Positions 11,501 to 57,900 of a stretch of DNA of 64,000 nt are shown here, piece after piece. The stretch lies in assembly GCF_003918875.1 (NCBI RefSeq), contig NW_025766984.1:1054001-1118000 (forward strand). Reading direction: 5' to 3'. The DNA is from Haliotis rubra (Eukaryota). How positions within the stretch are numbered: position 1 is the stretch's first letter; every line of letters begins with the position of its first letter. Both the position numbers and the translations under genes were made by a program. The notes below the pieces were generated by a model. It was not told where the DNA came from. It saw nothing but the letters and a program-made list of their open reading frames with translations, and ran no database searches.

Positions 11501-14500
11501 GCCTCCAGTATGACATATTTTTGGGCAGCTTTCAACAGTAAACAATATTCTTTGTGACCAATGGAGATATTGCTCCGGTGCAAATGCCCGGGTTAGAACT
11601 GATCATCAACAACAATGTATGGTTGTCGAATAACGGGATCGAGTGGCCTGGCTCGCTGACGGAGATATTGCTTTAGTGTGAAGACCCGGGTCTACTGATC
11701 ATCAGCAAACATATATGGTTGTAATAACGGGATCGAGTGGTCTGGCTCGCCGACGGAGATATTGCTTTAGAGTGAAGACCCGGGTCTACTGATCACCAGC
11801 AACAATGTATGGTTGTAATAACGGGATCGAGTGGCCTGGCTCGCCGACGGTGCTTTGCTTTAGAGTGAAGACCCGGGTCTACTGATCACCAGCAACAATG
11901 TATGGTTGCCATAACGAGATCGAGTGGTCTGGCTCGCTGACTTGCTGTGGTGCGTGTCATCACTTCCCAAACTGCTGCGTATATCAACGCTCCTGATATC
12001 AGCCAATGGAATGTCGGGGTTAGACTCCGACATCAATGAACATCAACCAAATAATGCATACTGTTGCTGCAACGTAAGATGTTAACTCACTGCATGTGTG
12101 GCACCTAACATTTAAATGAGAGAGTAAGTTTGGTTTTACGCCGCTTTAGCAATATTTCAAATATTTCAGCAGTATCACGGCGGGGGACACCAGAAAAGGG
12201 CTTCACACATTGTACCCATGTGGGGAATCGAACCCGTGTCTTGCGACGACGAGCGAACGCTATAAAACTAGGCCACCCGTAACATTTAAATAACACCCAT
12301 GCGGTACTTATACAAGATTCATGTAACGGTCTCCAACTGGAACCATATGAATTCTTTGATCGAATCGAAAACATCAATTGAATAGTGACATTCTTTTTCA
12401 AAATTCACTATAACAAAGTAAACGTTTTGACAGTGCGGACACATACTGATGCGAGATACGGGGTTTGTACATATCTCAATTCTTGAAGGTGTCCACTTGT
12501 AAACATTTCCTAAAACATCTTCTATCATTAGAAAAAGTACACAAAATTTCATGATATATGGAGAACGTGGAAGACTCCAACTATCTAACATAGTTAGCAG
12601 GAGGATGGTGTGTTTGGGGGCAAAAACTATCCTACGTGAAAATCATCTGAATTATCCTTCCTTGTATACACGTTATTGTTTACTGACGATTCATTTGGAA
12701 AGTGTAAACATGAATGGACTATATATACATATCAAATTAACCTTTGACGAACTGGGCTTTACTACACCTGGTTTTCGCAAAATTTCACAAACCCTTATCT
12801 AAACAATTAAATCACATTAACCTACCGTCTTGGCGCAATGTATAGTGTCATAAAAAGTGAATGTTTTGAATATTACTAAAACGAACTGCATTAAAGAAAA
12901 CAATTGGCAAATGATATTTAAGTCTACAACAACTAATCTGCCTATTAGAACTGTGAGGTTCAGAAAAAGTAGCTTGGAAAATGGCCAAAATCTGACGTAG
13001 ATGATAAATTCCATTGCTGTCCATCTTCAGAAAACGAAAACGTCTCACCTGTGTGTAACCCGTGAAGATCCGGGTTAGAATATCGATCTTCAGTAACCCA
13101 TGCCTGTCGTAAGAGGCGACTAACGGGATCGGGTGGTCAGGCTCGCTGACTTGGTTAACACACGTCATTGGTTCCCAATTGCGCAGATCGATGCTCATGC
13201 TGTTGATCACTGGATTGTCTGGTCCAGACTCGATTATTGACAGACCGCCGCCATATAGCTGGAATATTGCTGAGTGCGGTGTAAAACTAAACTCACTCAC
13301 TCACTCACCTGTGTGTACTGGGTCTCTGTCACACCTGTGTATTGGGTGTTTGTCTCACCTGTTTGTACTGGGTCTCTGTCACACCTGTGTATTGGGTGTT
13401 TGTCTCACCTGTGTGTACTGGGTCTCTGTAACACCTGTGTTTGTCTCACCTATGTGTACTTGGTCTCAGTCACACCTGTGTATTGGGTGTTTGTCTCACC
13501 CGTGTGTACTGGGTCTCTGTCATACCTGTGTATTGGGTGTTTGTCTCATCTGTGTGTACTGGGTCTCTGTCACACCTGAGGATTGGGTGTTTGTCTCACC
13601 TGTGTGTACTGGGTCTCTGTCACACCTATGTATTGGGTGTTTGTCTCACCTGTGTGTACTGGGTCTCTGTAACACCTGAGTATTTGGTGTTTGTCTCACC
13701 TGTGTGTACTGGGTCTCTGTCACACCTGTGTTTGTCTCACCTATGTGTACTTGGTCTCAGTCACACCTGTGTATTGGGTGCTTGTCTTACCTGTGTGTAC
13801 TGGGTCTCTGTCACACCTGAGGATTGGGTGTTTGTCTCACCTGTGTGTACTGGGTCTCTGTCACACCTATGTATTGGGTGTTTGTCTCACCTGTGTGTAC
13901 TGGGTCTCTGTAACACCTGAGTATTGGGTGTTTGTCTCACCTGTGTGTACTGGGTCTCTGTCACACCTGTGTATTGGGTGTTTGTCTCACCTGTGTGTAT
14001 TGGGTCTCTGTCACACCTGAGTATTGGGTGTTTGTCTCACCTGTGTGTACTGGGTCTCTGTCACACCTATGTATTGGGTGTTTGTCTCACCTGTGTGTAC
14101 TGGGTCTCTGTAACACCTGAGTGTTGGGTGTTTGTCTCACCTGTGTGTACTGGGTCTCTGTAACACCTGAGTATTGGGTGTTTGTCTCACCTGTGTGTTC
14201 TGGGTCTCTGTCACACCTGTGTATTGGGTGTTTGTCTCACCTGTGTGTATTGGGTCTCTGTCACACCTGTGTATTGGGTGTTTGTCTCACCTGTGTGTAC
14301 TGGGTCTCTGTCACACCTGTGTATTGGGTGTTTGTCTCACCTGTGTGTACTGGGTCTCTGTAACACCTGAGTATTGGGTGTTTGTCTCACCTGTGTGTTC
14401 TGGGTCTCTGTCACACCTGTGTATTGGGTGTTTGTCTCACCTGTGTGTATTGGGTCTCTGTCACACCTGTGTATTGGGTGTTTGTCTCACCTGTGTGTAC

Positions 14501-15225
14501 TGGGTCTCTGTCACACCTGTGTATTGGGTGTTTGTCTCATCTGTGTGTAAGGGGTGTTCGGGTGTCCGTCTGATTTGTGCGTGATGGGGTGCTCGTCTCA
14601 CCTGTGTGTATGGGGTGTCTGCCGGTCATGATGGCGCTTCTAGTCGGGGTACATATCGGAGATACGTAGTAGTTGTTGAGGAGGATGCCATTATAGGCAA
14701 GTTTGTCCAAAAATGGGGTCCTGATCTTAGAACCATGGAAGCCGACGTCACCCCAGCCCTGGAAATATTGCAAGCTATACTGTGTTCATCAGCGCAGAGC
14801 AAGAAGATATTTTAACTCCTTGCATACAAACAGTCACACATGACTGATCACTGATGTTAAATTATGCATGTCCTTTATCTACTGTCATAACATGACGCAA
14901 ACGTCAGTAAAAATATTTATTATTCTTCAAATCATTAATGTTCGCAATAAAATTTTGCTGCTTATGACAGAAAATAAAAGTTTATTTTGCTGTGATACTT
15001 GTCTTCACAATAGTTGTATCACCGATCACCGAGCTATAAAGTGAAAAATCGATCACTGTGTTAAATATATTCCAAGCGTGAGTCACGGATTGTAGACATA
15101 CTTACCAACCTGCTGTTATTGATTATACTCACCAGGTCATCCGCTACAATGAAGATAATGTTTGGGGGTTTTGCCTGTGACGTCACACACAGGAGCAGTA
15201 GCACAGTGATAAACACAGGCTTCAT
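5510..15225 (-). CDS. ARSB: Arylsulfatase B-like paralog G1, 8 exons, 517 aa, intact
   Basis: Exons 15225-15133, 14758-14602, 10642-10530, 10010-9897, 9136-9014, 7462-7333, 6810-6657, 6179-5510 (1554 nt, all GT-AG, phases consistent). Signal peptide [33 protein letters not shown], FGly motif [31 protein letters not shown]. The symbol denotes the ARSB/I/J-like family, not proven 1:1 orthology. Confidence 0.93.
7531..8715. mobile_element. Non-autonomous DNA element (GG..CC termini, 8-bp TSD) in G1 intron 5, hosting a Penelope fragment
   Basis: TSD tttatcaa at 7523-7530 and 8716-8723; imperfect TIRs with aactacatccca subterminal repeats; absent from the short homologous G2 intron. Confidence 0.6.
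7640..8200 (-). mobile_element. Penelope-like retroelement fragment with inverted terminal (pLTR-like) segment
   Basis: Minus-strand remnants [11 protein letters not shown]...[19 protein letters not shown] and [13 protein letters not shown] (RT end, Cys linker, GIY-YIG start). Hammerhead-like motif on the plus strand at 8123-8160. Confidence 0.7.
9502..9658 (-). mobile_element. SINE family A (tRNA-derived)
   Basis: A/B-box head (tagcctagtggttaaagcg, ggttcgattccc), body, and (TCAC)n tail. Confidence 0.85.
10742..10907 (+). mobile_element. SINE family A
   Basis: Full length, (TCAG)n tail, TSD gtattggaga. Confidence 0.88.
10978..11422 (-). mobile_element. Two adjacent SINE family B copies
   Basis: 10978-11222 and 11231-11422 both match the family B consensus. 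Confidence 0.85.
11563..12050 (+). repeat. About 94-bp x4 tandem repeat built from a SINE-B 5' half, ending in the rest of the SINE
   Basis: Unit starts at 11563, 11661, 11755 and 11849; each unit contains taacgggatcgagtgg..tggctcgc.gac. Confidence 0.8.
12118..12279 (-). mobile_element. SINE family A
   Basis: Flanked by TSD taacatttaaat. Confidence 0.82.
13058..13307 (+). mobile_element. SINE family B, full length
   Basis: 14-bp TSD ctcacctgtgtgta (13044-13057 and 13304-13317); (TCAC)n tail shared with family A. Confidence 0.9.
13304..14600 (-). repeat. Splice-donor-derived minisatellite in G1 intron 2 (50-nt dimer of 24+26-nt units, about 25 dimers)
   Basis: Sense-strand unit gtgagacaaacacccaatacacag-gtgtgacagagacccagtacacacag resembles the exon-2 end/donor agacaccccatacacacag|gtgagac. 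Confidence 0.92.
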
Positions 15226-15409
15226 TTTCCGCTAGAGAGTCACGGGTGATTCGTTTGACTTCAATAAAATATAGTCAGTGTCGTCCCGCGAAATCTATAA
15301 TAAACAATATCGTATGGTTACCATGGACAAGTTACAAAATTTGACTGCAGTTTGATGAAGTCAACGAAGAGCGTAACAAATTACCTATAATTAGATCTTT
15401 TTTCACCTC

Positions 15410-15418
15410 GTCACATGA
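15410..15418. promoter_or_regulatory. M-box/CLEAR-like E-box upstream of G1
   Basis: GTCACATGA about 185 nt upstream of the ATG; conserved in G2 (31313-31321) and as TCACGTGAC in G3 (41138-41146). Confidence 0.45.
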
Positions 15419-15692
15419 TCACGATACGCCTACAAAGACACACAGTACGATTGCCTGTCAGCAAAGCGCTCTTTGCTTCAGTGTACGGGTGATACTGTGG
15501 CGATAACTTACTTTATGTCCAGGTCAACCTCCAGTTACGTATGCAAGTCGACTACAACATATTCACCCATGAAGGCTGACGATAAGATATGAACAAGTAG
15601 TTGGCGCGCAGAGAGCAATGCAGGCGTTCATGCATTTAGCTTGTTGACATAATGATTAAAGGGAAACAACTCTTCACGCCTCCACGATCTTC

Positions 15693-23757: not shown

Positions 23758-26700
23758 TTATAGCCACCATGTCCACGCACCCCCGTGAAGTTGGGGGTCG
23801 GCGTTAGGATCAGGGTCCTTGTTGGCGGGAGGGACCATGGTTTTCCTGTACTCCTCAAGTCTGGCCAGTAACGACTGAACCTGGTCTTGGTTTGTGGAAG
23901 CTATATTGTGGAATTCGCACGGGTCGCTGGCAATGTGAAACAAACATGGCGACACTTCCGGTTGACAGTTAGTCTCGGCATCCACGGGCTTTTTGCCGCA
24001 ATTGACGTTCAATGGATGCGCGTTTGTATTGAACACTTTCACGAATTCACTTCCAGAGGGATGTCTGATCTCGGTGTCCTTTCCTTCAGGTGGCGGGTAC
24101 CAAGAATCGTCTTTACCTTCTGAGATGTCTCCCATAACAAGTTTATACTCCCCAACTCTAATAGATGAAAAGTTCTGTATGGGATCAATGTTATGTAATA
24201 TTTCGTTCCTAACAGCGGCGCCATTGTTCGACAACATTTCCCACAGATTGTAGCCATCTTGGTTCTTGAGCTTGCTGACGTCACCTCCGGCCGCGTGGTA
24301 GAGTGTGGGCAGCCAATCAGTGATATGCATCATGTTCTCCTGGACGTACCCGGATGTAGAGAGAAGAGGGCTGTAGACGAAGCCATTTCCCCGCACCCCG
24401 CCTTCCCACATCGTGTTCTTGCAGCCCCTGGGGAAATACACAGAAATAAATATAACAGTATTGGTATAGCTGAGACTACGATGATTTGATGTTTAATCAC
24501 TAAAATGATCAGTTGAATGATTAAACATCAGAATCCTAGTGGTCTAACCTCTTCAAAACATAAATGCAAAATGTTTATTTTAGAAAGTGGTCAAATGTAA
24601 CAAATGTTTTGTTTGGGATAACATTTTCTCAATTAAGTACAAAATCTGGTACTTTTCTGGTTGAGTCGCATCTGAGATTCTAACCCATGCTCTCAGAGGG
24701 AGGCTCCAAATTGTCAGCACACAACGTTAGCGATGTCACTCAGGCATCCATCGATGCTTCCACAACAATGGAAGTATGGCAAATGACAGTAAAGATCAGG
24801 TACTGTGTGTCCCTCTAATACTCCTCCGTGTTAATCTGAATATATATCCGTGTTCTACACGCGGATAATATGCTACTCAAAAGCAGTTAAAGAATGACCG
24901 ATAAGTTATTATAATACTTTTGTTTATCTGTCATGAGGGATGCCTGTCTTTTCATATACTCATGCCAATAATGGTTGTCACCCCCTCCCCACCCCAACCC
25001 CACACCCACACCCACACCCACACCACCTCTCCAATAAAAAATATTGAAGGGGGTGACAACCATTATTGGCATGAGTATATTACTGTAGTTAGTATGTCAT
25101 TTAATTTGGGGCGATGGGGTAGCCTGGTGGGTAAAGCGTCCGCTCGTCACGCCGAAGTCCCGGGTTCGAATCCCCACATGGGCACAATGCGTGAAGCCCA
25201 TTTCTGGTGTCCCCCGCCGTGATATTGCTGGAATATTGCTAAACGCGGCGTAAAACCATACTCACTCACTCACTCATTTCATTTGACCAGGACGCGCATG
25301 TGTGTGTGAATGTGTGTGTCTGTCTGTCTGTATGTCGTATGCTACTTTCCTTTCACTGATATTTCCACTCGCATGCTCACATGTTCACGACCAAATATGA
25401 TTTAGGAAATGCAGTTCATCTGAACAGCATATACCTCACAAAAAGTGTATGACACCTTTATCATTTAAGATGTGTCTCATCGAAAGAAAAAAATATCATG
25501 ACTAGTTTCAAATAAACTTAACCTGCTACACTGCAGTAAGAAAGCTGTAACACACCTAAGAGGCCAGTTGCATGCCGCATTGTGATCGTAGCCATTGGTT
25601 GGTCCCCGTTGTCGGTCGTGAAGACGATGATGGAGTTGTTCAGCATCCCCGTCTGCTGCAACGTTGTCGTCACGTTAGCAACAGCTTCATCCAGAGCCGA
25701 CACCACTCCTGAAGCAACCAGTTAGTACAGTGTAGATATTCTACAATCACCGGTATCACCGTCAACAACGGCCATGAAAGGAAACTTTTTCATTGAATTT
25801 TAAGAAGGCCCATTAGACTTGCACCGTCAGGTTAAAGAATGACGAGACTTGAATCCAGAAGAATAGGCTACCACTTACGCTTTCGCTGCTACATATATAT
25901 TCGTATTTTGTTTTTTCCGACACTTAAGAAACATTCGTTATCATTCGAATCACTAAACAACTAGAACACACCCCACTAACCCATTAATAATTACCTTATC
26001 CTAAACGCAAGCCATCATTAAAGAATTGACAATGTCTGTACGACGCAATTCTTCTCGTTATCGGCCGAGTAAGTATACTTCCGTACAAAAACCTTCGATC
26101 CAACTATAGGTGAAGTCTCTCTGGCGCGGTATTGACCTTTAACCCGTTAAAGCCTTTAACCCATTTATTGCTAAAATATAAGGACGCTACAGTGTTTATG
26201 TGATATTTTACCAGCAAATATTTTCCTCTGTGTATCCTTAATATCTGGGAATCTGTCAACATATTTCTGTGGTGCTTGAATGGGATCGCCACTGGGATTC
26301 CCAGAATGCACTGCTTGAAATGCCAGATACAGGAACAGCGGCTGCGCATATAACAGACATGAAAATTAGAACAGACTTGGTATACATGGTATGTGTGAAC
26401 ACCCGGTGTTTACTGTCACTGTTCAAATTCAAATTGTAAGTCGGATTGCACTGCACATACATGAAGTAAAATTAATTTTGAAAAATATCTATAACGTATT
26501 ATTTTCAGTGTTTTCTTGATGTTTTCCCCCTATATTTAGGCATTACCACCAATATGTAGAGTTATGCTTACTATATTCAAGGCTAACATAGTCGCCATTA
26601 AATCCGTCCCCACCTTTGACTTGTTATGAGCTTTTATGACGTCACTGGCCTCTGACGCAAATAGTGTTGTCGAATATTCCTCATCATCATTACGCACCAC

Positions 26701-38300: not shown

Positions 38301-40975
38301 AGTGTTGTGGAATACTGTTCATCATCATCATGCACCACGTCCAGGTTCCGGCGGAAGTCCAGCCCCCACATGCCCTGAAACACAACCCCAGCGACTCTCT
38401 CAACATGTAATATCATACCTTAGGTACCCGATGGCACCACTCAACCACGTCTCAGAGCAAAGTATTCGAAAGAAGCCAAAACACAATTACTAATAAAATA
38501 ATTAACGAGTGTTCAAAACATAGAAATGTTTATTTTATTTGCCTATTTTTTCAAACTGAATATCCACATATTGCCGATGACGTTGAATTTTAATACTCAC
38601 TCAGAATATCCACAAAGAAGAGTACATTGTCAATACTCAAACTGTTGAGTCCGAGTTGACGATATATTCACAAAACGACGATATACAATCCAGATGTTGC
38701 TTACTCGTTGTTGTCAACTCGTACTCAAATGTAACACATTTCTATATATTTGAACAGACCTCGTTGGTAGCCCTAAATAACGGTTAGAAAAGACGTGGAT
38801 ATTCACTACTCACCTCCGGGCCCTGGCTTGTGTGGTCGAAGTAGTCTTCCTTCCCCGTGTAGTAACCGAAATGGGAATCAAACCCGCGCATAGTTGGAAT
38901 GTAATCCTTTTTGAAGAAGCCCAAATGCCACTGCAACATGCATTGTAGTGTACTGTGAAGTTGTATTAGAATGTGTGTATGCAAGGAATTGCATGATTAC
39001 ATACACGCTGACATACACGATTCTCTGTCTCTATATGAGCCTATAAGTATGACTCTGGACCAGACAATTCAGTGACTTACACTGGCGAACATCAATCTAC
39101 ACAGTTGTGATACGATGTATCAACCAGGTCTGCCCATCAGATCCCGTTAGTCGTCTCTTGCGACAAACAAATGCAACAACACGCTTTTTGACATGGAATA
39201 AATCAAGTAAATAAAATGACTGCCGTACTAAAACATTGATACAGTTGACAAATTTAACAGTTTGAAAAGAAAGATGTCATTAACTGATCGTTCCTTTTTC
39301 ATTTTGAAAACATTATTACTTCTGACAGTACTGACCAATAGAAAGCTCTGCCCTTGTGTCAGTCAGTGTTTAGCTCACCTTACCAATGATGTGTGAAGCG
39401 TACCCCAGCTCGTTGAGATACTGGGGCATGATGGTCTCGTTCAGAGACAGGCCATACGGAGTGGTCTCCTTGATCACCTTGTGCTGCAGACCTGCCAATA
39501 AACTAACGATTAGTCTCTGGAAATATATAATGTTGATAAAATATATTAACTGTAAATTAAAAAGGGTTACCCACTTAGGTGGAACTGAAAATAGTATGGC
39601 TGAGGAAATGTGAGACAGACTAACCTACAGATGCCCAGTATCTGAACAGTAACCCTATACTTATTGTTTATATCTCCGGGGCGGTGGGGTGGCCTAGTGG
39701 TTAAAGCGTTCGCTCGTCACACCGAAGACCCGGGTTCGATTCCCCACATGGGTACAATGTGTGAAGCCCATTTCTGGTGTCCCCGCCGTGATATTGCTGG
39801 GACATTGCTATAAGGGGCGTAAAACTAAATTCACTCACTCATCCTTTACATCACCAGAGGTCGCATGTAAGTAAACCTTCACTCACTCCTGGATCCTAAG
39901 AACCATGGAACTCGATCCAGCAGTTAGTGTTTCCGACATGCGACCCCAGGAGACAGAAAAGATGCATCATACCCTGGACGTGGTCAACAAAGGGATAATT
40001 CCACCTGCATTCCTTATAACTGCATACATTGGGTGTGTGTACAGCTGACTGTATTCTTCGTTGATTGGCCCGGCCGGGATTATGTTAAATGCTGATTAGT
40101 CAATGGAAGCCATATTAAATTATATACTACATTATTGCGAAAATGCATTTTGACGCCATTCAGTGATGAAGACATCACGTAACTTCATCTGAACAGGGGC
40201 GGTTCGGTAGCCCAGTTGTTAATGCATTCGCTCGTCATGCCCAAGACCAGGGTTCGATTCCCTTCAACGCGTGAAGCCGTTTTCCGGTTTATCAGTACTG
40301 CTGAAAGCGGTGTAAAACTACATACACTCACCCATTCACCTGAACAACGGCTGCTCTATTGGGTTGACGTTTCATGTGTTTCTGCTCACCTATGTGGATA
40401 GGTTGTCCATGTCACCTGTGTATAGGGGATGTCCATCTCACCTGTGTGAATGGGGTGCCTGCCGGTCATGATGGCGCTTCTAGTCGGGGTACATAGTGGA
40501 GACACATAGTAGTGGTTGAGGATGACGCCATTGTATGCAAGTTTGTCCAGATGCGGCGTCCTGATCTTAGAACCATGGAAGCTGACGTCACCCCAGCCCT
40601 GGCAATATTGAATGCTGTACTATCCGTAATTTTAAACAAATTACCTATATACACATACACACATGGCAGATGAAAACATCGGTCGCAAAGATTTAGCATT
40701 CACGAAAGGAATTCATGTTGTCTATTTAAACAAGGAAAAGGTTTGCTTTACTGTGATTCTGTCTGTATCTTCAGTGCTCTGTTATTATCGACTCAGGCAA
40801 TACGTGCAATATCGATGACTCTATGCTAAGTAACAGCAGAACAGGCATACTTACCAGCCTGCTGTTATTGATTATACTTACCAGATCATCCGCTACAATG
40901 AAGATAATGTTTGGGGGCTTTCGCCTGTGACGTCACGCACAGGAGCGATAGTACAATAATCAAAGCAAGCCTCAT
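35380..40975 (-). CDS. ARSB: Arylsulfatase B-like paralog G3, 8 exons; 1-nt insertion in exon 1 as assembled (519 aa if corrected)
   Basis: Exons 40975-40882 (94 nt versus 93), 40598-40442, 39491-39379, 38930-38814, 38374-38252, 37888-37756, 36804-36651, 36049-35380. CTPTR and GKWHLG intact. Extra base at 40913-40921 (gggggcttt). Confidence 0.88.
37176..37394 (-). mobile_element. SINE family B (diverged)
   Basis: Similar to the family B consensus. Confidence 0.7.
39678..39841 (+). mobile_element. SINE family A
   Basis: Full length. Degenerate copies also at 40196-40336 (+) and 34693-34840 (-). Confidence 0.88.
40335..40441 (-). repeat. Short donor-derived array (2-3 degenerate units) in G3 intron 2
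   Basis: cacacag|gtgagatggacatcccctatacacag gtgacatggacaacctatccacatag gtgag. Confidence 0.7.
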
Positions 40976-41905: not shown

Positions 41906-44900
41906 TTAAACATGTCTGCCGATAATATTTGGTATGCTGATCAACCCTTGTTCATCCGCAAGCCATGGTCCCCATGCCCCACCGTGAAGGGCGGGATTGG
42001 CCCGGGGGTCTATCGGTTTGTTGGAGGGCGGAACCATCGTTTTTCTATACTCATTAATCCGGTCCAGCAGAGCCTGCACTTCCGCCGGATGTGACGCAGC
42101 AATGTTGTGGAACTCACACGGATCGCTTGGAATGTGGAACAAGCATGGGGCTACCTCGGGTTTACAGTTGATCTCAGCATCTAGTGGTTTAGGTCCGCAT
42201 TTCACATCAATAGGTTGACCGACGACGGCGATGTTGTCAGTTGAAGGGCTGCCGCTGAGGGACCGGTTTATGTCGACAGCATTAGCTTCCGGAGGGGGAT
42301 ACCACGAGTCATATTTACCACCCGAGACATGCCCATCTACCAACTTGAACTCGCCCACTCTTATAGCTGAAAAGTTTGCTGTTGGGTCGATGTTGTGTAT
42401 GATCTCGTATCTCACAGCATCACCTTTGGTTGACAACATTTCCCACAGATTGTAGCCATCTTGGTTCCTGAGCTTGCTGACGTCACCTCCGGCTGCGTGG
42501 TAGAGAGTTGGCAGCCAATCAGTGATATGCATCATGTTCTCCTGGACGTACCCGGATGTAGAGAGTAGAGGGCTGTAGATGAAGCCATTTCCCCGCACCC
42601 CTCCTTCCCACATCGTGTTCTTGCAGCCCCTGGGGAAATACACGGTGCGTATCACTGAAAGTTTACACTGAATTATTTCGAAGATGCCACACAGCATGAT
42701 CAGCTTTAACTAATGATGAACATCCTGATCATGTTCGTACCCTTTGTCTCTGAAAATATATCGTTTTGATAAATAAAGGAGCCCCACTGAGATTTGAGAT
42801 TCAAATGTTTTTGCATTACACGAAACCTTGGGCAGAATGGAGGGTGGGGTGGGGGATGGTGGGGAAGCATATTTCAGGGACTGTGATTACTAGTTTTAGT
42901 AAGAATCCAGTTGGTGCGCGTTACCCTGACACATAAAGATGACACGCTCTTATGTCACTACAGCTATGTTAACAGGACTCAAGTACTCATCCTCGATAAC
43001 TCAAGGCTAATATCGAGTGTTGATATTAGACCCTACTGACGATAACGTGTAATCAAAACTATGGCGTTACATGGCTAAAACGAATTATCCCTTTCATATC
43101 ATGGACGGCTTACAAGGTGTTTATATACTACTCAACTTTTGATAAGGATAATCATACATATCAGGTGCATTCCCATATAAACACTGGACATATAATGAAA
43201 ATAGTATCTTTAGAAATGAAAAGATAAAAGTATTCCTGTCAAGTATTCCTATTTATTCCGACACACTGATTCATCCAGTTTCGAGTCGTGCCTGAGACTG
43301 ACTGACTGAGTTTGGTTTTACGCCGCTTTTAGCAATATTCCAGCAATATCACGGCGGGGACACCAGAAATGGGCTTCACTCATTGTACCCATGTGGGGAT
43401 TCGAACCCGGGTCTTCGGCGTGACGAGCCAACGCTTTAACCACTAGACTACCCCACTGCCCCCCGTGCCTGAGAAGCAGTAAGTGATGTGAAGAACACAA
43501 TGTGGCTATGAGGTTACACGTATTTAACGTTATATCCAGGCCCGATTTCCACACTACGTGTAATACCTGAGTGGCCAGTTACAAGCAGAGTTCCTGTCGT
43601 AGCCGTTGGTGGGTCCGCCGTTGTCTGTGGTGAAGATAATGATGGAGTTGTTTATCATCCCCGTCTCCTCCAGTGTCTGGAAGACGCTGGCGACGGAGTC
43701 ATCCAACGCCGAGGTCATCCCTGCAACATCACCATGTGTCTAGAAGCACGGTAAGCAATCCGTTAATCGTGGGTTTGATTCCGCAGAGACGACTGACTGA
43801 CTGACTGAGTTTGGTTTTACACCGCTTTTAGCAATATTCCAGCAACATCACGGCGGGGGACACCAGAAATGGGCTTCACACATTGTGCCCATGTGGGGAT
43901 TCGAACCCGGGTCTTCGGCGTGACGAGCCAACGCTTTAACCATTAGGCTACCCCACCGCCCCCCGCAGAGACGAAGCACCATAAAGTTGTTATGCAATGG
44001 GGGATACCACAGGGTATCTCCGTGTTTGCAGACATGCATATATCATATTTATCTTAGAATCCCGGGAACCACCAAATTGGAAAACCCTAATCCCAACATC
44101 AGCCCCCAACCTTACCTCTGATATATTTTTGTGTTAACACACAAATCACTCACATACTGAACACAGTAGACAAAGATTACCAGCAAATGTCTTCCTGGGG
44201 ACGTCTTCGATGCCAGGGAATCTCTCGACATATTTCTGAGGTGCCTGGACCGGATCGCCATTGTAGTTCCCGGCATGCACTGCTTGGTGAGCCAGCCACA
44301 GGAACAGAGGCTACAGAGACCGGAACTGACGTCAATGATTGCCAGGCAAAATGAGAAGCGGACATTCTCAGATTTCATGAGGAAATGTGACAGATGAAGA
44401 TCCGGGTTGGAACCTATCTCCAAGTGTGTCAATGTTTATAATGTCACATGCTAGTTTATCTGTTCCAGTCTCGATAACTGGCACAGCAGGAGTGTTGTCA
44501 AAGTTTATAACTTTATTGGGCACTCTTATTAAACGGTACTTCAACGTACGACAACACTGCTCTTAAAATATATTTCAGAAATTCGAACTAAATGTTTAAA
44601 AGAAAGGCAAACATTCAAGGTTTTGTATGGTCAGTTATACTTTCTGAAAGCACAGTGTTTCATTTTTCACTGTTTTGCAATCACGTCGTGGACGTTATTT
44701 ACGTTAATCACGTAGTGGACGTTAATCACGTAGTGGACGTTATTTACGTTAATCACGTAGTGAGTGTTATTTACGTTAATCACGTCGTGGGCGTTATTTA
44801 CGTTAATCACGTCGTGGACGTAATTTACGTTAATCACGTCGTGGGCGTTATTTACGTTAATCACGTCGTGGACGTTATTTACGTTAATCACGTCGTGGAC

Positions 44901-47900
44901 GCATTACCCCAAGTCTATAAGTGAGTAAGTGAGCGAAGCTTTTACACTTATTTCAACAATTTTTGAGGAATATCGCCCAGATATGGGCTCCATATATTCT
45001 AACGATATAAGAAATCGAATGGTTTAACCACTCGGCTACATTGCCCACTGTAACTCGTAAGAGTGTACCAAGGATGCAATTTGATCAATACCGTGATTGA
45101 GTTGGGGCAATAAATACTGTTATGTTGAACATAAATACAAGTAGAATCTAATCTAGGCACACCACAAAATCTGTTACATCCCTACGTGCTGACATTGGTC
45201 TTACCTGTGATGTATTGTGGAGTCGGAGAATCGCGTTTGCTTCCTGCGTGTACAGCTCGGTGGAATATGTTTCACCGTAACCCCGTTCTATTGCCCGGTT
45301 CCGCCGGAAGTCGTAACCCCAGTATCCCTAGGGATGGAGTTTAACAATGTTTGACCCAAAATACCCTTCTAATTTATACATGACAGTAGCTGCACTAATC
45401 GTGAACAATATATTTCTGTCATGGTACAACTTATATAAATGTAAATGTATGAATGCATATGAGTCTGTGGATTCAGAAAAATGACACGAGATTAATACAA
45501 ATGTGTGGCTGATACCGATGCATTTATGAATATGGATATTTAATAATCCCTTTTCAAACACCATTAAGGCCAAGTATATGATAAAAAGAGATTACGAAAT
45601 GCTTGTGGATGCCACCTGTTGCTTGTATGACTTTTGAAACTGAAACCAACTTCCCTTGCATTGTATTCAACACTGGAGAAATGAGACCCATGAAGGTCCA
45701 GGTTACAATATTGATCTTCAGTATCCCATGCTTGTCGTAAGAGGCGACTGACGGGATCGGGTGGTCAGGCTCGCTGGCTTGGTTGACACATGTCATCGGT
45801 TCCCAATTGCGCAGATCGATGCTCATGCTGTTGATCACTGGATTGTCTGGTCCAGATTCGATTATTTACAGACCGCCGCCATAGAGCTGGAATATTGCTG
45901 AGTGCGGCGTAAAACTAAACTCACTCACTCACTCACTGGAGAAATGTACTGAGACGAAGGAGTCTTTCTGGGCCCACTTTTAGTGTATGATGAAATAATA
46001 GTCGTGTCCCTAGCAAACATCGAGCAGTTTATATGAGATATGTAGTTTATTATTACCCCCCATCCGTCCTCGGCGGAGTGGTCGTAGTAGTCCTCGTGGC
46101 CGAGGTAGAAGCCCAAGAAGGAGTCGAAACCTCTCCTAGTGGGGGTGTGGTTCTCTGTATAATGGCCCAGGTGCCACTAGACATGCCAAAGGAAAACGTT
46201 ATTGTTACACTGTATACAGTGAGACCCCATTAACCTGGACACAGTAACATGGTAACCTCATTACCATTGAAACCCCGGTTGCCGGTAACCCCGTATGTAT
46301 GGATACCCCTACGTTACGTAGGAAGATATGACAGGAGTAACCTCTGTGAGAAGAGAATGGGATACCCCTTGTTTGGTCATCATGTTAGTCCAGGTTAGAA
46401 TATATCTTCAGCAACCAGTGCTTGTCGTAAGAGGCGACTAAATGGATCGGTGGCCAAGCTCGCTTACTTGGTTGACACACGTCATCGATTGATTATGTAC
46501 AGACCGCCGCAATAGCTGAAATATTGCTGAGTGCGGCGTTAAACACGTGGACGGTACTGTCCAGATTAAGGCTTCTATTATGGTATTAAAAGTGGTTGAA
46601 ATGAATTTGACAAAGTGTTAAAAAATCATGATGGGGAATTTCAACCGTTTCAGTCTCAGTCATTGGTGTATGCACTGCCCAGGGTCCTTATTCTCGAAAT
46701 GTTCGTAGCCCTAAAAATTCTTAACTTTGATCGTTGCCAATGTGTTAAGAATGTGCTTAAGAAGTTCATAGGGCTACGAACGTTTCGAGCATTGTGACGT
46801 CACGGGCAGAGTTAACTGTTACTGTTCAGTTTTTACCTGATGATGCGGCCAGAACAAGTCCTGAAACGTTGTACTCAAGAATAAAAAGAAGATGTAACCC
46901 AGAAAAAGTCTCTATTGTTCATCAAATAGCATCTTCTAAAATGCCAATCGAGCATCTGTTTCGAGAATAGCTGTCCAGGACAGAAATCATATATAATTAT
47001 CATTGTTTATATTCATTAGAACGCCGTAGAGATCATACGTCACCCATACCTTCCCCACGATGTGAGTGGCGTACCCGAGCTCCTTCAGGTACTGCGGCAT
47101 GATGGTCTCATTCAGAGAGAGGCCGTACGGAGAGGCACCAAGTATCACACCGTGCTGCATTCCTGTGTCAGAATGGGGGAGATTAGCGTCTCTATGAATA
47201 CTGTAGTTTTGTTGTTTTACAGAATGTCACGTTAATGCAGAGGACGAACTAGCCATTGATTCTAATCTTGTATCAACTCTACATCCAATTATGATATAAT
47301 CTTGGACCCCTTTGCGTCATATCTCAATGGGATAAATCCTGTCATTTCTGACCATTACCTGTATGTATGGGGTGCCTCCCAGTCAGTACTGACCCCTTAC
47401 CTGAATGTGTGGGGTGCCTCCCAGTCAGTACTGACCCCTTACCTGTATGTATGGGGTGCCTCCCAGTCAGTACTGACCCCTTACCTGTATGTATGGGGTG
47501 CCTCCCAGTCAGTACTGACCCCCTTACCTGTATGTATGGGGTGCCTCCCAGTCAGTACTGACCCCCTTACCTGTATGTGTGTGGGTGCCTCCCAGTCAGT
47601 ACTGACCCCTTACCTGTATGTATGGGGTGCCTCCCAGTCAGTACTGACCCCCTTACCTGTATGTGTGGGGTGCCTCCCAGTCAGTACTGACCCCCTTACC
47701 TGTATGTATGGGGTGCCTCCCAGTCAGTACTGACCCCTTACCTGTATGTATGGGGTGCCTCCCAGTCAGTACTGACCCCTTACCTGTATGTATGGGGTGC
47801 CTCCCAGTCAGTACTGACCCCTTACCTGTATGTATGGGGTGCCTCCCAGTCAGTACTGACCCCTTACCTGTATGTATGGGGTGCCTCCCAGTCAGTACTG

Positions 47901-49326
47901 ACCCCCTTACCTGTATGTATGGGGTGCCTCCCAGTCAGTACTGACCCCCTTACCTGTATGTATGGGGTACCTCCCAGTCAGTACTGACCCCTTACCTGTA
48001 TGTATGGGGTGCCTCCCAGTCAGTACTGACCCCCTTACCTGTATGTATGGGGTGCCTCCCAGTTAGTATGGCTGTCCGGGTGGGACTGCAGATAGGGGAC
48101 ACATAATAGTTGTTCAGGATGATGCCTTTGTACGCCAGGGAGTCAATGAACGGAGTTTTGATTTCTGATCCATGGAAGCTGATGTCATGCCATCCCTAGA
48201 AGCAACAACAACAACAACAACAACAACAACAGCAACAGCAACAGCAGCAACCTGTGGTTGATTGCATGAACGACGATCCAGATATGTAACGAACATACGC
48301 CCTTATGGATCACAACTTGTTGTTTGTTTCAAAGAGCTACGTTGCGATGTAGATTCGTACACGTGATCAAGCTAACAGTGACCACTGCCAGTAGCACGGC
48401 TGGATGAGGCCAGGTGGAGAGTGAGGGCAACACATAGCACAAGTCATGAAGTGAATTTTCAGGAAGGATTAAATTGTACATAGGCTTACTGGATGATAAT
48501 TGAATAGTTGAATAATAGAGTGTATCACTTGATTACATCTTCACAGGCCGATAGTATGTAATACCTGATCCCGATTTCGTCGGGTACGATAACACTAACC
48601 AAGGTCACTTCACTTTGATAACCTATTCTCATTTAGGTATATTTTCACTTCACTCCAGATTACGACAAGCATGTCTGGTATCAACGTGATGTCAAACCTT
48701 GAAAGGTGACCTAGATATCTATCTGGTGACCTAGTCCCTATTCTCTATGCATCATTACACTGGAGATAAAGGACGTGTGTTATTATTGCTATTAATTTTT
48801 TAGTTTCTCCGTAGTCCACCGAGACTAGTTTCCCTTAAGGTAATACAAACGCCCTACATGAAGCAAGTATAGATTTTCCTCAGGTTTCTCCACCATACCA
48901 GGGCTCCTTTTCAATTTAATTGGACTTTCTTGTGTCCATCAAAATTATATATTTTCAGCGACTAAGCTTATGTCTAGTTTCTCTTGAACTGTCACTGTTT
49001 TACTATCTTCGTGACAGCCTGTCACTTGCTCCCATATCACTGCTGACAAAATTCGCTGAACAGACAAACAGAATAACACTACATTGGGTTCAACGCAGAG
49101 TTGTAGCGAAGTAGGTAAAGTGTCATGTCGTTGACCCGGGTCGACTCCCAATTCCATGTATTCCCACTGTGACCTTCTTGTGGTGTTTCTGAAACCATGT
49201 TGAACTGATTCCTCAACTTACCATGTCATCAGCGACAATGAAGATGATATGGGGACGGGTTGATTGTAGAACTACACGTTGGATGGCTGTTAGCAGACAC
49301 AGGGACAGCACCTCAAACCACATCAT
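41906..49326 (-). CDS. ARSB: Arylsulfatase B-like paralog G4, 8 exons, 541 aa, intact
   Basis: Exons 49326-49222, 48195-48039, 47162-47050, 46176-46057, 45327-45205, 44310-44181, 43720-43567, 42629-41906 (1626 nt). Signal peptide, [39 protein letters not shown]. Confidence 0.92.
43297..43463 (-). mobile_element. SINE family A
   Basis: TSD gtgcctgaga. Confidence 0.88.
43792..43962 (-). mobile_element. SINE family A
   Basis: TSD gcagagacga. Confidence 0.88.
44679..44900. repeat. 27-nt minisatellite, about 8 copies
   Basis: Unit aatcacgtcgtggacgttatttacgtt. Confidence 0.9.
45684..45934 (+). mobile_element. SINE family B, full length
   Basis: TSD cactggagaaatg. Other B fragments at about 9230-9378, 39045-39165, 46388-46545, 53065-53279, 54295-54460, 59682-59892 and 62437-62550. 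Confidence 0.9.
47355..48063 (-). repeat. Splice-donor-derived minisatellite in G4 intron 2 (42-43 nt, 17 copies including the real donor)
   Basis: Sense unit actgggaggcaccccatacatacag|gtaagggg(g)tcagtactg; its first 25 nt are identical to the G4 exon-2 end. Confidence 0.95.
48201..48251 (-). repeat. (GTT)n/(GCTGTT)n microsatellite at the G4 exon-2 acceptor
   Basis: Directly precedes cttctag|GGA. Confidence 0.85.
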
Positions 49327-51920: not shown

Positions 51921-54900
51921 ATGGATGACCTCCTCATCTTACTCCTCCTAGTACTGCCGGCGCTGTGCACGGCGGCGACACGACCACACATCATCCTCAT
52001 CGTAGCAGATGATCTGGTAATCCTGGCTGTTTTAGTTCCATATTCCATGTATTAAGGACTAAAGGTGTGCAAGTCAGCATAGCTTAGAGTGTACAGATAG
52101 AACAGATATCTCTATATGTGTCTCTATAGACTAACACAGTGTCTCTGAATATACATGATTTTGATACTTGGGGTGAAACGGTACGCTCTTACCACAGTAC
52201 GGTACATATTGCGGTCAAAGCCTTCGGTTCGGTCTTTTTCGGGTCGGTATATGAGATTTGATGATCATGCAGAAAATTGACACAAGATCCAAACCTTACA
52301 TTGTTTATTAACATGGAAAAAAAACTAACCATTATGTTTGTTATTTTGAATGAACATTTTAGGTCATTTTATGACTAGATAGAAATGAAGGTACGAAAAC
52401 CGAAAATACCGAATTTTTTCATTGCATTAAGGTATACCATATCGAAGGCAAAATGCTGTGGTTCTACTGTTACCGCAGTATACCATTTCACCCCTCTTTT
52501 CACCACAAACAATTCATTTTAAATTGAAAAGTTGCTCCAGTGAGATAGGGATTTAGACCTGAACCCGAAATCTACACCTGCTTCATTTAGGGCTTTAGCA
52601 TTGCAGGGAGGGGTGGGTGGAAGGAAAATAATGCAGTTATGAGACTGTGAGACAGTCTAGTGATTTCACTGCATCACTATATGATCAGTGATAACATCCA
52701 GGCAAGATTGGCTGTATCTTAGCACTTTGACCTTTTGTCAAGGGGAGTCATTGTTATAAAAACACTTGTGCCACACCATGCTTATCAGAGTTGTAATAGG
52801 TTATACTGGGGTGGTGCTCAGCATGTTGAATATGTGTGATTAGGGCCAAGAGAAATAAATATGTATAATTGCTTAGAATTATAATGATCATATTTCTTTG
52901 ACAGTAGTTCTGTTCCATCTTATCTGCAATTAGTTTTCTCCATAAAAATCTATAATGAATATGATATACTTCATCCTTGCAGACTGTATTTTATGTTGAT
53001 TAGAATTCTGTTTTTTGTTGTTGGTAAATCACCCAGAATAGGTGTATTGTTGTTGGTTGTTTTGATGGTTTGTTGTCTAAGGCCTGACCCTGCAATATTC
53101 CAGCTATATGGCGGTGGTCTGTAAATGATCGAGTCTGGACCAGACAGTGAAGTGAACAACGGTATGAGCAACGATCTATGCAATTGGATACGATGACATG
53201 TGTCAACCAAGTCAGCGAATCTGCCAACCCCATCCCGTTAGTCGCCTCTTATTACAAGCTGGGGTTACTGAAGACCAATTGTATATTGTACAACAATACA
53301 TTACCTAGTACAGGTACATTGTACAACAATACATTACCTAGTACAGGTACATTGTACAACATACATTACCTAGTACAGGTACATTGTACAACAATACATT
53401 ACCTAGTACAGGTACATTGTACAACAATACATTACCCAGTACAGGTACATTGTACAACAATACATTACCCAGTACAGGTACATTGTACAACAATACATTA
53501 CCTAGTACAGGTACATTGTACCCCAGTATTTCAACAAATACAGGTACATTGTACCCCAGTATATCAACAAATACAGGTACATTGTACAACAATACATCAC
53601 AATACAGGTATATTGTACATCAATACATGACCTTGTAGTACAGGTACATTGTACCCCAGTATATCAACAAATACAGGTACATTGTACCCCAGTATATCAA
53701 CAAATACAGGTACATTGTACAACAATACGTCTCAATACAGGTATATTGTACATCAATACATGACCTTGTAGTACAGGTACATTGTACCCCAGTATATCAA
53801 CAAATACAGGTACATTGTACAACAATACGTCACAATACAGGTATATTGTACATCAATACATGACCTTGTAGTACAGGTACATTGTACCCCAGTATATCAA
53901 CAAATACAGGTACATTGTACAACAATACGTCACAATACAGGTATATTGTACATCAATACATGACCTTGTAGTACAGGTACATTGTACCCCAGTATATCAA
54001 CAAATATAGGTACATTGTACAACAATACGTCACAATACAGTTATATTGTACATCAATACATCACCTTGTAGTACAGGTACATTGTACCCCAGTATATCAA
54101 CAAATACAGGTACATTGTACAACAATACGTCACAATACAGTTATATTGTACATCAATACATCACCTTGTAGTACAGGTGCATTGTACACAGTACATCACC
54201 AGATACAAAGGAACATGGTGGAAATTGGTCAAGGAAACAAGAGAACACCCTCTGATGCTCAGTACTTTTAGTGCTGCTAAAGTAGACAAAGAGGATTGGG
54301 TGGCCAGGCTCACTGACTTAGTTGATGCAAGTCATTGTATCCCAGGTGAGTAAATCAATGTTCATGATGTGAGTCACTGGATTGTGTGGTTCAGACTTGA
54401 ATGTTTACAGACCATTGTCATACAGCGGGAACACTGTCAGGTGTGACATTAACCATTCAGTCTGAGTATGTTGTCAGTGATTAATAAATACTGATGTGTT
54501 TAACACTGGTGATACTTGTTCATTTTGTACTTTTATGTTTAGCGATATTTAGCAGAGTCAGTTGTTGATGTTTACAGGGATACAATGATGTCAGCTTCCA
54601 TGGGTCTGATCAGATCCCAACCCCCAACATCGACAACCTCGCCTACAACGGCATCATCCTTAACAACTACTACGTGTCACCTATATGTACTCCGACTAGA
54701 AGCGCTCTCATGACCGGCAGACACCCTATACACACAGGTGAGACAGATTCCCTGTACACACAGATGAGATGGACACCCTATACACACAGGTGAGATGGAC
54801 ACACCATACACACAGGTGAGATGGACACCCCATACACACAGGTGAGTCAGACACCCCATACACACAGGTGAGACAGACACCCCATACACACAAGTGAGAT

Positions 54901-57900
54901 GGACATCCCATACACACAGGTGAGCCAGACACCCCATACACACAGGTGAGATGGACATCCCCATACACACAGGTGAGCCAGACACCCCATACACACAGGT
55001 GAGCCAGACACCCCATATACACAGGTGAGATGGACACCCCATACACACAGGTGAGATGGACATCCTATACACACAGGTGAGCCAGACACCCCATACACAC
55101 AGGTGAGCCAGACACCCCATACACACAGGTGAGATGGACAGTCTATCCACACAAATGAGATGGACACCCTATACACACAGGTGAGATGGTCAGTCTATCC
55201 ACACAGGTGAGATGGACACCCTATCCATAAAGATTGTTCTTCTTCACCCAATAGAGACCGTAATCCCACACCCACAGGTGAGACTGGCCCCTTATTCAGA
55301 GAAGACAGAGCTGAAGTTACATCATCTGTGTACCATGGTTAGGTGATGGTTTTACACATATATCCTGTGTGTCAGGTATGCAGGTTGGTGTGCTTGTTGG
55401 AGATGCCCCGTACGGACTTCCCCTGAATGAGACCATCATGCCTCAGTACTTCCAGGAACTCGGATACAGACGACACATAGTTGGCAAGGTGAGAAGGTTG
55501 ATGGTGACATGGGCCCTTACCTAGTACAGAATCTACATGATTATTCACTGAAAAGTTTCAGAAATATGTTGTAAACATCACTGACAGCCAAAACACCAAC
55601 TTTACATGATCAATAATTATTTCTCTTACAAATGTCTGTTCTTTTCTAAAAATTGGCATTGGCATTTTAATATTGTGTCTACTGATGTTGTGTAGATGAA
55701 TATGTGCAAGCTGTAGATATATGTTTTTTATGACATGAATGTGTCCGACTGACTTCCAGTGGCACCTGGGCTTCTTTGCAAAGGAGTACACACCCACTTA
55801 CCGCGGCTTCGAGTCGCATCTGGGCTACTGGCTCGGGGCGGAGGACTACTTCGACCACACAGCTGAGGCAAACATGGTAGGGAAACTGTGTCTCCCTGGG
55901 GCAAACATAGGGTTGTGTCAGACCATGTGATGTGTCATCAATAGAACAGGGTTGTGTCGGATCAGGTGATGTGTCATTGAATAGAACAGGGTTGTGTCGG
56001 ACTAAGAGATGTGTCATGGATAGAACAGGGTTGTGTTGGACTAAGAGATGTGTCATGGATAGAACAGGGTTGTTTTGGACTAAGAGCTGTGACATCAATA
56101 GAACGGAGTTGTGTAGGACCAGGTGATGTGTCATAAATAGAACAGGGTTGTGTCGGACCCGGTGATGTGTCATAAATAGAACAGGGTTGTGTCGGACCAG
56201 GTGATGTGTCATGGATAGAACTGGGTTGTGTCTGACTAAGAGCTGTGACATCAATAGAACGGAGTTGTGTAGGACCAGGTGATGTGTCATTGAATAGAAC
56301 AGGGTTGTGTCGGACCAGGTGATGTGTCATTGAATAGAACAGGGTTGTGTCAGACCAGGTGATGTGTCATTGAATAGAACAGGGTTGTGTCGGACCAGGT
56401 GATGTGTCATGGATAGAACTGGGTTGTGTCGGACTAAGAGCTGTGTCATAAATAGAACAAGGTTGTGTACGACCGGGTGATGTGTCACTGAATAGAACAG
56501 GATTGTGTTGGATTAAGAGATGTGTCACCTAGTTAGTATTGGGTCCTGTAGGTCCCATGATTGGAATTTGAATACCCTTTCCTATTTATTTATGACTCTA
56601 TATCTTGTCAGAAACAATGGGGGCTGGACTTCCGCCGGAACATGGAGGCCCTGCACGACCAGTATGGGAACTACTCCACAGAGATTTTTACACAGGAGGC
56701 TGTCAGCATCATCAACAACCACAACCAAACTGAGGTATGTTGTACACCTGGTGCTGGTATGTTGTACACCTGGTGCAGGTATGATGGACACCAGGTGCAG
56801 GTATGATGTATACCTGGTTGAAGTATGATGTACACCTGGTGCAAATATGTTGTACACCTGGTAGAGGTATGTCATACACCTGGTGCAGGTATTTTGTACA
56901 CCTGGTAGAGGTATGCTGTACACCTGGTGCAGGTATGTTGTACACCTGGCAGAGGTATGCTGTACACCTGGATCTGGTATGTTGTACACCTGGTGCAGGT
57001 ATGTTGTACACCTGGATCTGGTACATTGTACACCTGGAACTGGTATGTTGTGCACTTGGTACTGGTATGTTGTAGACCTTGTACTGGTATATTGTACACC
57101 TGGAACTGGTATGTTGTACACCTGGTAGAGGTATGTAGAACACCTGGTGCAGGTGTGTTGAACACCTGGTACTGGTATGTTGTACACCTGGTGCAGGTGT
57201 ATTGTAAACCTGGTGCAGGTATGTTGTACACCTGGAACTGGTATGTTGTACACCTAGTGGAGGTATATTGTACACCTGGTGCAGGTATGTTGTACACCTA
57301 GTACAGGTATGTTGTACACCTGGAACTGGTATGTTGTACATCTGGCAGAGGTATGTTGTACACCTGGTAGAGGTATGTTGTACACCTGGTACAGGTATGA
57401 TGTACACCTGGAACTGGTATGTTGTACACCTGGTACAGGTATGTTGTACACCTGGTGCAGGTATGTTGTACACCTGGTACAGGTATGATGTACACCTGGA
57501 ACTGGTATGCTGTACACCTGGAACCGGTATGTTGTACACCTGGTACAGGTATGTTGTACACCTGGTACAAGTATGTTGACCATGTGGTACAGGCATATTG
57601 TACACCTGGTAGAGACATCAAGTACACCTGTTCTCCAGTGAATGAGTTCATCACCTGTGTTTCTACCCTTGCAGCCCCTCCTACTGTACCTGCCCTACCA
57701 GGCAGTCCACAGCGGCAACCCAAACGCGTTCACACTTCAGGCACCCCAGAAATATGTCAATAGGTTCCCTCATATTCAAAACATCAAGAGGAGGTTACTT
57801 GCAGGTGAGACGCATGAAGCTTTGACAACACTTGTGTTCAGTGTATTGTTGGAAGGTGTTATGTTTAAGTACTGTTTAAGTACCAGTAACTTCGGGGACC

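Follow-up and report, generated by a model that had tools for sequence, protein, structure and literature searches.

Why should the splice donor at the end of one and the same exon carry a tandem array in every gene of a cluster, and do the many extra donors that result have any part in splicing? This question is raised by a stretch of 64,000 nucleotides (nt) from the abalone Haliotis rubra (contig NW_025766984.1, positions 1,054,001 to 1,118,000), hereafter the window. This 64-kb window contains five arylsulfatase-B-like paralogs, with G1 to G4 on the minus strand, G5 on the plus strand, and G4 and G5 head to head. In every paralog, the catalytic exon (C[TS]PTR...GRHPIHT-G|gt) sits immediately 5' of an array built from its own end and its own donor. 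We consider it likely that these arrays are tolerated, junction-anchored minisatellites of the "mirage" type described in amphioxus, a by-product that changes fast, and not a means of regulation. The data can be accounted for without assigning the extra donors any function.

The catalytic exon (C[TS]PTR...GRHPIHT) was found five times in the window by a six-frame scan. Gene models were built by tblastn with full-length relatives, and the splice sites were then set by hand. The models comprise eight exons, with GT-AG at all modelled introns. The sulfatase identity of the genes (PF00884, arylsulfatase B/I/J-like) was supported by the C-x-P-x-R motif, present as CTPTR or CSPTR in exon 2, and by full-length homology; PF00884 was found on all protein matches and the closest proteins were from gastropods. 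Exons 2-6 of G1 (5510-15230, minus strand, eight exons with exons 2-8 in frame) were 100% identical to the H. rubra RefSeq arylsulfatase B-like protein XP_046575327, and those of G5 were 100% identical to H. rubra XP_046575335, which RefSeq marks as "LOW QUALITY PROTEIN." Against proteins of H. asinina, H. rufescens and H. cracherodii, the same exons of the two genes showed 94-98% identity. By these identities the DNA belongs to H. rubra, the blacklip abalone, or to an animal that cannot be told apart from it; an amphioxus source, considered in view of the mirage literature, was rejected on the gastropod protein matches and the 100% identities. Exon 2 occupies 14602-14758 in G1 (CTPTR, ending in CACACAG|GTGAGA), 30503-30659 in G2, 40442-40598 in G3 and 48039-48195 in G4 (CSPTR, ending in CATACAG|GTAAGG), all on the minus strand, and 54578-54737 on the plus strand in G5, where RNA contigs lie on 54577-54738.

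Tandem repeats in the window were called with Tandem Repeats Finder (TRF). In all five paralogs a tandem array spanned the exon-2 donor, with its 5' edge 6-33 nt inside exon 2, so that the first unit is the real junction. As read in G1 to G5, the repeat unit consists of the final 18-25 nt of exon 2 followed by GTGAG or GTAAG and 6-18 intron nt. The units run head-to-tail, with TRF periods of 26, 42/43 and 50 nt and 2 to 25 copies. The initial annotation of this DNA had placed arrays in intron 2 of all five paralogs, at given positions and periods, and had described their unit as the end of exon 2 plus the GT donor; TRF agreed with the former and our reading of the five junctions with the latter.

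The five arrays differ in unit and in state of preservation. The G1 array (13304-14619, minus strand; TRF part 13304-14549, 50 nt x 25.3, 91% matches) begins with three decayed 26-nt units, followed by a 50-nt dimer x 25 in which CAG|GTGAGA alternates with a weaker CAG|GTGTGA. The G2 array (TRF, 30082-30524, minus strand) is a decayed series of 26-nt units (75-83% matches), whose distal sub-array at 30082-30340 is composed of the donor-dead unit CGGATGAG. The flanks of the G1 and G2 arrays are 88-90% identical and the arrays themselves are unlike. In G3 (40376-40460, minus strand; TRF 40393-40447, 26 nt x 2.2), the exon-end unit is accompanied by two more 26-nt units, with a short interspersed nuclear element (SINE) directly behind them. 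The G4 array (47341-48071, minus strand; TRF 47341-48068, 42/43 nt x 17.2, 96%) has a unit made of 25 nt from the gene's own exon end and 17-18 intron nt. In G5 (TRF, 54720-55221, plus strand, 26 nt x 19.3, 85%), the unit closest to the true donor is donor-dead (CAGATGAG), and a few units (CCCTATAC) share the exon's own synonymous T, which points to exchange with the exon copy. Array interiors were homogenised while the boundary units had decayed.

We have scored as donor-like any site in intron 2, behind the true donor, with at least seven of nine matches to CAG|GTRAGT. Past the true donor there were 41 such sites in G1, 5 in G2, 5 in G3, 16 in G4 and 17 in G5, in keeping with the previous claim of up to dozens of donor sites behind the true one. 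In G4, all 16 extra donors passed the threshold, each with a 9-mer that equals or nearly equals that of the true donor, and 15 of the 16 reached its score of 8/9. The 9-mer CAG|GTGAGA occurred 11 times in G5, the true donor included, and 21 times in G1. The use of any distal donor would bring in a frameshift or an in-frame stop, so that the premature termination predicted earlier holds for each of them; the 42-nt units of G4 are divisible by three, and here it is the retained sequence that has a stop.

Arrays of this kind could be an assembly artefact, or a satellite brought in by a transposable element. The assembly has a probable homopolymer error (at 60083), and the G1 and G3 arrays are each followed at once by a SINE, both of which would fit. 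However, in two sets of genomic short reads from this organism, contigs covered the arrays at raised word depth, orthologous arrays were present in the independent assemblies of H. rufescens and H. asinina, and the units are made from each gene's own exon letters. Since short-read contigs and the assemblies of two other species carry them, the arrays are not an assembly artefact, and we regard this whole explanation as very improbable.

The RNA evidence on splice-site choice consists of assembler contigs, which drop rare isoforms. RNA contigs joined G5 exons 3-4-5 and 6-7 via the first donors (introns 3, 4 and 6), and the letters leading and trailing the aligned part of one G5 contig suggest that it includes exons 5 and 8 too. 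A 2979-nt transcript contig with 6% mismatch, probably from a neighbouring paralog, exited exon 2 exactly at its true end and did not enter the array. None of the listed contigs spanned G5's own exon 2-3 junction, the contigs stopping at the end of exon 2. The RefSeq protein models of H. rubra, H. asinina, H. rufescens and H. cracherodii run from GRHPIHTG straight into exon 3. We have also considered whether RNA structure hides the distal donors, and rejected it: only the G4 units folded better than shuffles (z = -2.9), with the true donor in the same context, and folding in G1, G5 intron 2 and G5 intron 5 did not differ significantly from shuffles.

The arrays were also compared among congeners. 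The H. rufescens cluster is syntenic, and an exon-2 donor array was found in each of its sulfatase genes. The G5 intron-2 array of 26-nt units has 19 copies in H. rubra, 28 in H. rufescens and about 3 units with decayed relics in H. asinina. The G4 array has 42/43 nt x 17 in H. rubra, 43 nt x 13.7 in H. rufescens and two units in H. asinina, the second one donor-dead. The 50-nt dimer x 25 of G1 is matched in the G1 or G1-like gene of H. rufescens by 26 nt x 38, and no 50-nt dimer repeat was seen in the H. rufescens cluster. For the G3/G2-like genes, the decayed array (G2) and the 2-3 units (G3) of H. rubra stand against about 9 units of the 26-nt type in H. rufescens. A further paralog, P0176, is situated in H. 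rubra a little past the window's right end; in H. rufescens its array reaches 26 nt x 225 (5.7 kb, L006 11025-16771). Copy number therefore differs about ten-fold between congeners with intact genes, H. asinina being near loss of the G5 and G4 intron-2 arrays. The comparison of the three Haliotis species also displays the length instability and the concerted evolution that characterize mirages. As copy numbers and unit forms differ between species and between paralogs, both turn over fast while the genes remain intact.

This turnover bears directly on the second proposal of the initial annotation, namely that the arrays are selected U1-binding or decoy elements that tune splicing by copy number. 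In its broader form, this explanation holds that the extra donors are cis-elements whose U1-binding sites enforce use of the first donor, suppress premature cleavage or, through decoy splicing and nonsense-mediated decay (NMD), tune output according to copy number. The array does recur at this one donor across all paralogs and three species, most units of the young arrays keep a full CAG|GTRAG, and in the 177 units analysed of the H. rufescens P0176 array position +3 is only G or A. However, copy number varies about ten-fold, H. asinina nearly lacks both arrays and has intact genes, and donor-dead units have been amplified in G2 (CGGATGAG) and stand next to the true donor in G1 and G5. The intact donors of homogeneous arrays would reflect youth rather than selection. 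The orthologs of Gigantopelta, Patella and Biomphalaria lack an array at this donor, Aplysia having a (GTT)n tract instead. The GT was intact in 163 of the 177 units and, by per-position conservation, was kept no better than the adjacent exon-derived ACACACA. Selection on the GT inside units was thus set aside as a candidate, GT conservation being no higher than that of its neighbours and uninformative either way, since units spread by duplication. Neither copy number nor donor integrity showed the constraint that a U1 decoy or a tuning device would call for, and there is no sign that the extra donors are protected. Taken with the first-donor joins in RNA, these data speak against the tuning proposal, and we judge selected elements to be an improbable explanation.

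The position of the arrays requires comment of its own. Five of the nine intronic arrays of at least 200 nt straddle a donor, with an expectation of 5% per array (P = 3.5e-5), and a conservative count of three independent origins among seven arrays still gave P = 0.004. At the exon-2 donor itself, arrays have arisen independently no fewer than two times, once as the class with 26-nt units and once as the 42/43-nt class of G4. The over-representation of donors may reflect a hotspot of array birth or a longer life of those arrays that begin with a selected unit. The earlier idea that splice donors seed minisatellites is hence upheld in outline, by the enrichment, the two origins and the findings in other gastropods.

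Junction arrays are not peculiar to exon 2 or to abalones. Intron 2 lies at the equivalent place in the six other gastropod species examined. Within the same sulfatase family, Biomphalaria has an array of 38 nt x 6 at the exon-5 donor; Gigantopelta has 35 nt x 18 at the exon-5 acceptor and 37 nt x 3 at the exon-5 donor; Patella has an array at the exon-7 acceptor; and Aplysia has 44 nt x 11 at the exon-8 acceptor, where every unit includes a pyrimidine tract and a branch-like motif, CTGAC. The H. rufescens ortholog of G4 has an exon-4 acceptor array of 54 nt x 7 that is 99% identical. Arrays that straddle or abut exon boundaries are thus general, occurring at other exons of this gene family and in other gastropods. 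The acceptor-side arrays were located in H. rufescens (L005 4527-4907), two Aplysia paralogs (L001 21328-21805 and L004 16710-16899), Gigantopelta (L007 8598-9251) and Patella (L008 6550-6774); they finish at or inside the downstream exon, and their units hold a branch-point-like CTRAC, a pyrimidine tract and AG. We also noted that the annotated protein of Aplysia californica P0002 (L004) departs from homology right after GRHPIHT and skips exons 3-5, in a locus where the assembly has many gaps; its assembly and gene model may have been broken by repeats that follow the exon-2 donor.

These observations give some weight to a junction-directed mutational hotspot, in which the junction would mark where duplications arise and raise their birth rate, be it through U1 bound to the nascent transcript, through an R-loop or through the splice-signal sequence. 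The enrichment at donors, the two independent unit classes at one donor, the acceptor-junction arrays with CTRAC and pyrimidine tract in H. rufescens and Aplysia, the presence of junction arrays in five gastropod genera and the equivalent phenomenon in amphioxus are all in its favour. On the other hand, the units have no constant footprint, their exon and intron shares being 18+8, 25+17 and about 16+21 nt. Of the ten large arrays in the window, four are internal or lie outside modelled genes, the G5 intron-4 and intron-5 arrays (described below) arose from intronic segments and not from a junction, and no such mechanism is established. A hotspot is therefore a possibility that we take seriously and hold to be unlikely. 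We are equally tentative about the wider proposition that minisatellites of abalone and other gastropods are truly born at exon-intron junctions, with duplication directed by a splicing-linked step or by splice-motif microhomology and with extra sites ignored under a strict first-site rule. If it were true, one would expect arrays genome-wide in which an identical donor or acceptor recurs dozens to hundreds of times.

The history of the paralogs constrains when the arrays could have arisen. In a maximum-likelihood tree, G1-G4 fell into one old clade together with paralogs from Lottia, Patella, Littorina and Babylonia, and G5 and P0176 fell into another (clade B) with Gigantopelta, other gastropods and bivalves, both with full support. 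The 26-nt unit is present in these two lineages, which split before gastropod diversification, but Haliotis alone had it among the genomes examined. In Gigantopelta, Patella and Biomphalaria, the clade-B orthologs had no exon-2 donor array, and that of Aplysia has a (GTT)82 tract from 3 nt past the exon-2 donor (L001 10165-10410). An array that is ancient and conserved across gastropods was accordingly rejected, H. rufescens being a congener and the orthologs of Gigantopelta, Patella, Biomphalaria and Aplysia lacking the 26-nt unit. As this unit occurs in two ancient clades yet only in Haliotis, the pattern points, in part, to either a parallel origin or spread within the cluster by ectopic exchange. 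The G4 class appears to have a separate origin, older than the split of H. rubra and H. rufescens, because its unit has G4's own exon letters and different boundaries.

Codon comparison gave a hint of exchange between the clades. In the 3' half of exon 2, 18 of 24 identical residues of G1 and G5 had identical codons, vs. 70 of 142 for the comparison set (P = 0.016). No rise in identical codons was found in that half for G3 vs. G5 or G4 vs. G5. Ectopic gene conversion between the two paralog clades within the cluster would be compatible with the G1 values, which are suggestive only. Synonymous sites were unusually alike in exon 4 as well, where 14 of 15 codons were identical between G1/G3 and G5, and this too would fit such conversion.

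We can now set out how tolerated, junction-anchored minisatellites would come about. A short segment across the exon-2 end and its donor would be duplicated in tandem. Slipped-strand mispairing is the likely cause, as the units have short direct repeats on either side, which for the 26-nt unit are AGACA in the exon and in GTGAGACAGA and for the G4 unit TACTAACTGG and TACTGACAGG. Slippage and unequal exchange would then expand, contract, homogenise and erode the array as in any minisatellite, which is the behaviour seen in the species comparison. The array would be harmless if, as the RNA data in part indicate, the spliceosome takes the first, exon-linked donor and treats later copies as ordinary intron. 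Persistence would follow from the first unit being a real exon end and donor under purifying selection: such a seed would not decay, the array could re-expand from it, and this "immortal seed" would let junction arrays outlast purely intronic ones.

Several points weigh against this account. Neutral birth alone does not explain the enrichment of donor-straddling arrays, nor why the exon-2 donor has been hit at least twice. The array has been kept at one donor in all six paralogs of the cluster and in three species, and such persistence could reflect selection. No contig bridges the exon 2-3 junction of G5 and rare isoforms are lost from contigs, so that distal donors may be used at a low level, with NMD following. 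There was also a possible strand bias: among 31 genic arrays, donor-like motifs were found in sense orientation in 16 and in antisense orientation in 3, or about 8 vs. 3 without orthologs and paralogs. We have not retained this bias as a result, as one array, through its orthologs and paralogs, accounts for most of the cases, and the independent counts, about 8 vs. 3, are not significantly different.

Tolerated junction-anchored arrays have a close counterpart in amphioxus, where minisatellites spanning exon-intron boundaries were named mirages and reported for Adh3, globins, PGBD5 and TnC (PMC3087553; PMC3902484). The Adh3 case is that of Canestro et al. 2002, as cited in PMC3087553, and the globins are BflGb6 and BflGb9 (PMC3087553). 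Amphioxus mirages leave splicing undisturbed, are unstable in length and undergo concerted evolution from which boundary units are excluded (PMC3087553; PMC3902484). The abalone arrays resemble them in having units of tens of base pairs (bp) that include the splice junction, be it a donor or an acceptor, often with AG/GT kept. The exon-2 arrays likewise consist of head-to-tail units within the mirage range of about 10-160 bp and start with a first unit that is the authentic junction, and the G5 intron-4 array does not. Length instability, concerted evolution and boundary units left outside homogenisation are also common to both. A normal mRNA may be a further likeness, to which the first-donor RNA contigs (G5 introns 3, 4 and 6), the transcript contig that exits exon 2 at its true end and the RefSeq models point on the abalone side. 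The abalone case differs in belonging to a gastropod mollusc and not to a cephalochordate, in the much larger size of its arrays (up to 225 units, 5.7 kb), and in that one junction bears an array throughout a six-gene family and three species. Unlike in the amphioxus globins, intron gain is not at issue.

A second counterpart is the 37-bp variable number of tandem repeats in intron 7 of human F7. As far as the account in PMC1557585 goes, its first repeat lies across the exon-intron boundary, and identical pseudo-donors are functional but silent, the most upstream site being chosen. In G1, G4 and G5 the authentic donor is similarly trailed by identical pseudo-donors. F7 is a single human locus for which that account speaks of "several" pseudo-sites, whereas the abalone arrays are found at a whole gene family; and for F7 the silence and latent function of the pseudo-donors are given as results of mutagenesis, whereas silence in abalone would follow from contigs and gene models.

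The initial annotation had held that classical intron gain is not involved, and we concur. In the Rogers model, introns are gained through tandem duplication of an AG|GT proto-splice site (discussed in PMC3087553). Tandem duplication that includes splice signals is common to both. Unlike in gain of the Rogers type, the abalone units take in 6-18 nt from the start of intron 2, an intron that was already there, and neither a new intron nor a new exon has appeared. The units also recall splice-related sites of other kinds. The known ratchet sites of recursive splicing (YAG|GTRAGT) occur singly, are conserved and lie in introns of great length. The G5 intron-5 units (YAG|GTATGT) resemble them, and all arrays, as in U1 decoys or telescripting, offer many U1-complementary sites. 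Unlike ratchet sites, those of abalone lie in introns that would be shorter than 1 kb without the array, and they are neither conserved in number nor shielded from decay. Literature searches for junction arrays in molluscs or abalones found no report; the intronic minisatellite described in one abalone paper is a polymorphic 27-bp repeat of the ordinary sort. What is new here is the phylum, the scale of up to 225 units and the recurrence at one donor across a gene family and three species.

Other arrays of the window were related to donors in a different way, or not at all. The G5 intron-4 array (55909-56527, plus strand, 39 nt x 16) contains CAG|GTGATG and begins 32 nt past the donor, and the segment from which it has grown is present in one copy in H. 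rufescens (137-nt intron), about five in H. asinina and 16 in the window. Having grown from a segment that is single-copy in H. rufescens, it appears to be an ordinary intronic minisatellite and not a copy of the true donor, so that the earlier view of a duplicated intron-4 donor was abandoned. In intron 5 of G5, the array (56733-57611, plus strand, 22 nt x 40, units YAG|GTATGT) starts at the GT of the true donor, but it has at most 2 nt in common with the exon. It occupies 94% of the intron, with 40 homogeneous units in the window vs. about 10 decayed ones at the equivalent place in H. asinina. Of the intron-1 donors of G1 and G3, also thought to be duplicated, each has only a single extra donor-like site 27 nt downstream, TTG|GTAAGT in G1 (15095-15135, minus strand) and in the same arrangement in G3 (~40845-40885). 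G5 intron 1 has an internal 33/100-nt array, 1264 nt from the donor, with CAG|GTACAT in its unit (53281-54207, plus strand). Two internal intronic arrays have no donor motif, one in G1 intron 2 (11598-11941, 94 nt x 3.6) and an ACGT-rich one in G4 intron 5 (44679-44901, 27 nt x 8.6); thus, not every array is junction-linked. A 31-nt x 36 array at 62874-64000, between G5 and the expected P0176 ortholog, runs past the right end of the window.

The window also holds eight copies of a SINE-like element with core AGTTTTACRCCGC..TCAGCAATATTCCAGC and a (GAGT)n head, including those at 13258-13303, 40300-40340 and 58434-58464. Copies stand directly behind the G1 and G3 donor arrays, and those in G5 introns 6 and 7 have a word depth of 10^4-10^7 in the DNA contigs. 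The exon-2 acceptor of G4 is directly preceded by a microsatellite, (TTG)n when read on the gene strand (48203-48251), which H. asinina has conserved (L009 6200-6257).

Some of the gene models bear lesions. In exon 8 of G5, an A7 run at 60083-60089 disrupts the frame; two DNA contig sets and one RNA contig from other samples have one A fewer, and the probable explanation is a homopolymer error in the assembly or a rare allele captured by it. G2 exon 7 has a -1 shift within a G run (~25605-25615), and G3 exon 1 (40882-40960) has a stop eight codons upstream of the conserved exon-1 end, with no ATG or signal peptide. The G2 and G3 lesions may mark pseudogenes or be assembly errors.

In practical terms, arrays of this kind disrupt mollusc gene models and short-read assemblies, Aplysia P0002 being a possible example. 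For biology, they add a second invertebrate phylum to a record made up of one human locus, F7, and a handful of mirage genes in amphioxus. The abalone sulfatases amount to natural experiments in 5' splice-site choice, with up to 225 donors, mostly intact and in many cases indistinguishable from the true one, spaced at 26 nt behind it and a coding mRNA still made, and six paralogs in at least three species, with 2 to 225 units, provide built-in comparisons. The system thus bears on the first-site rule, on junction-linked duplication as a mutational process and on array-driven exchange between paralogs.

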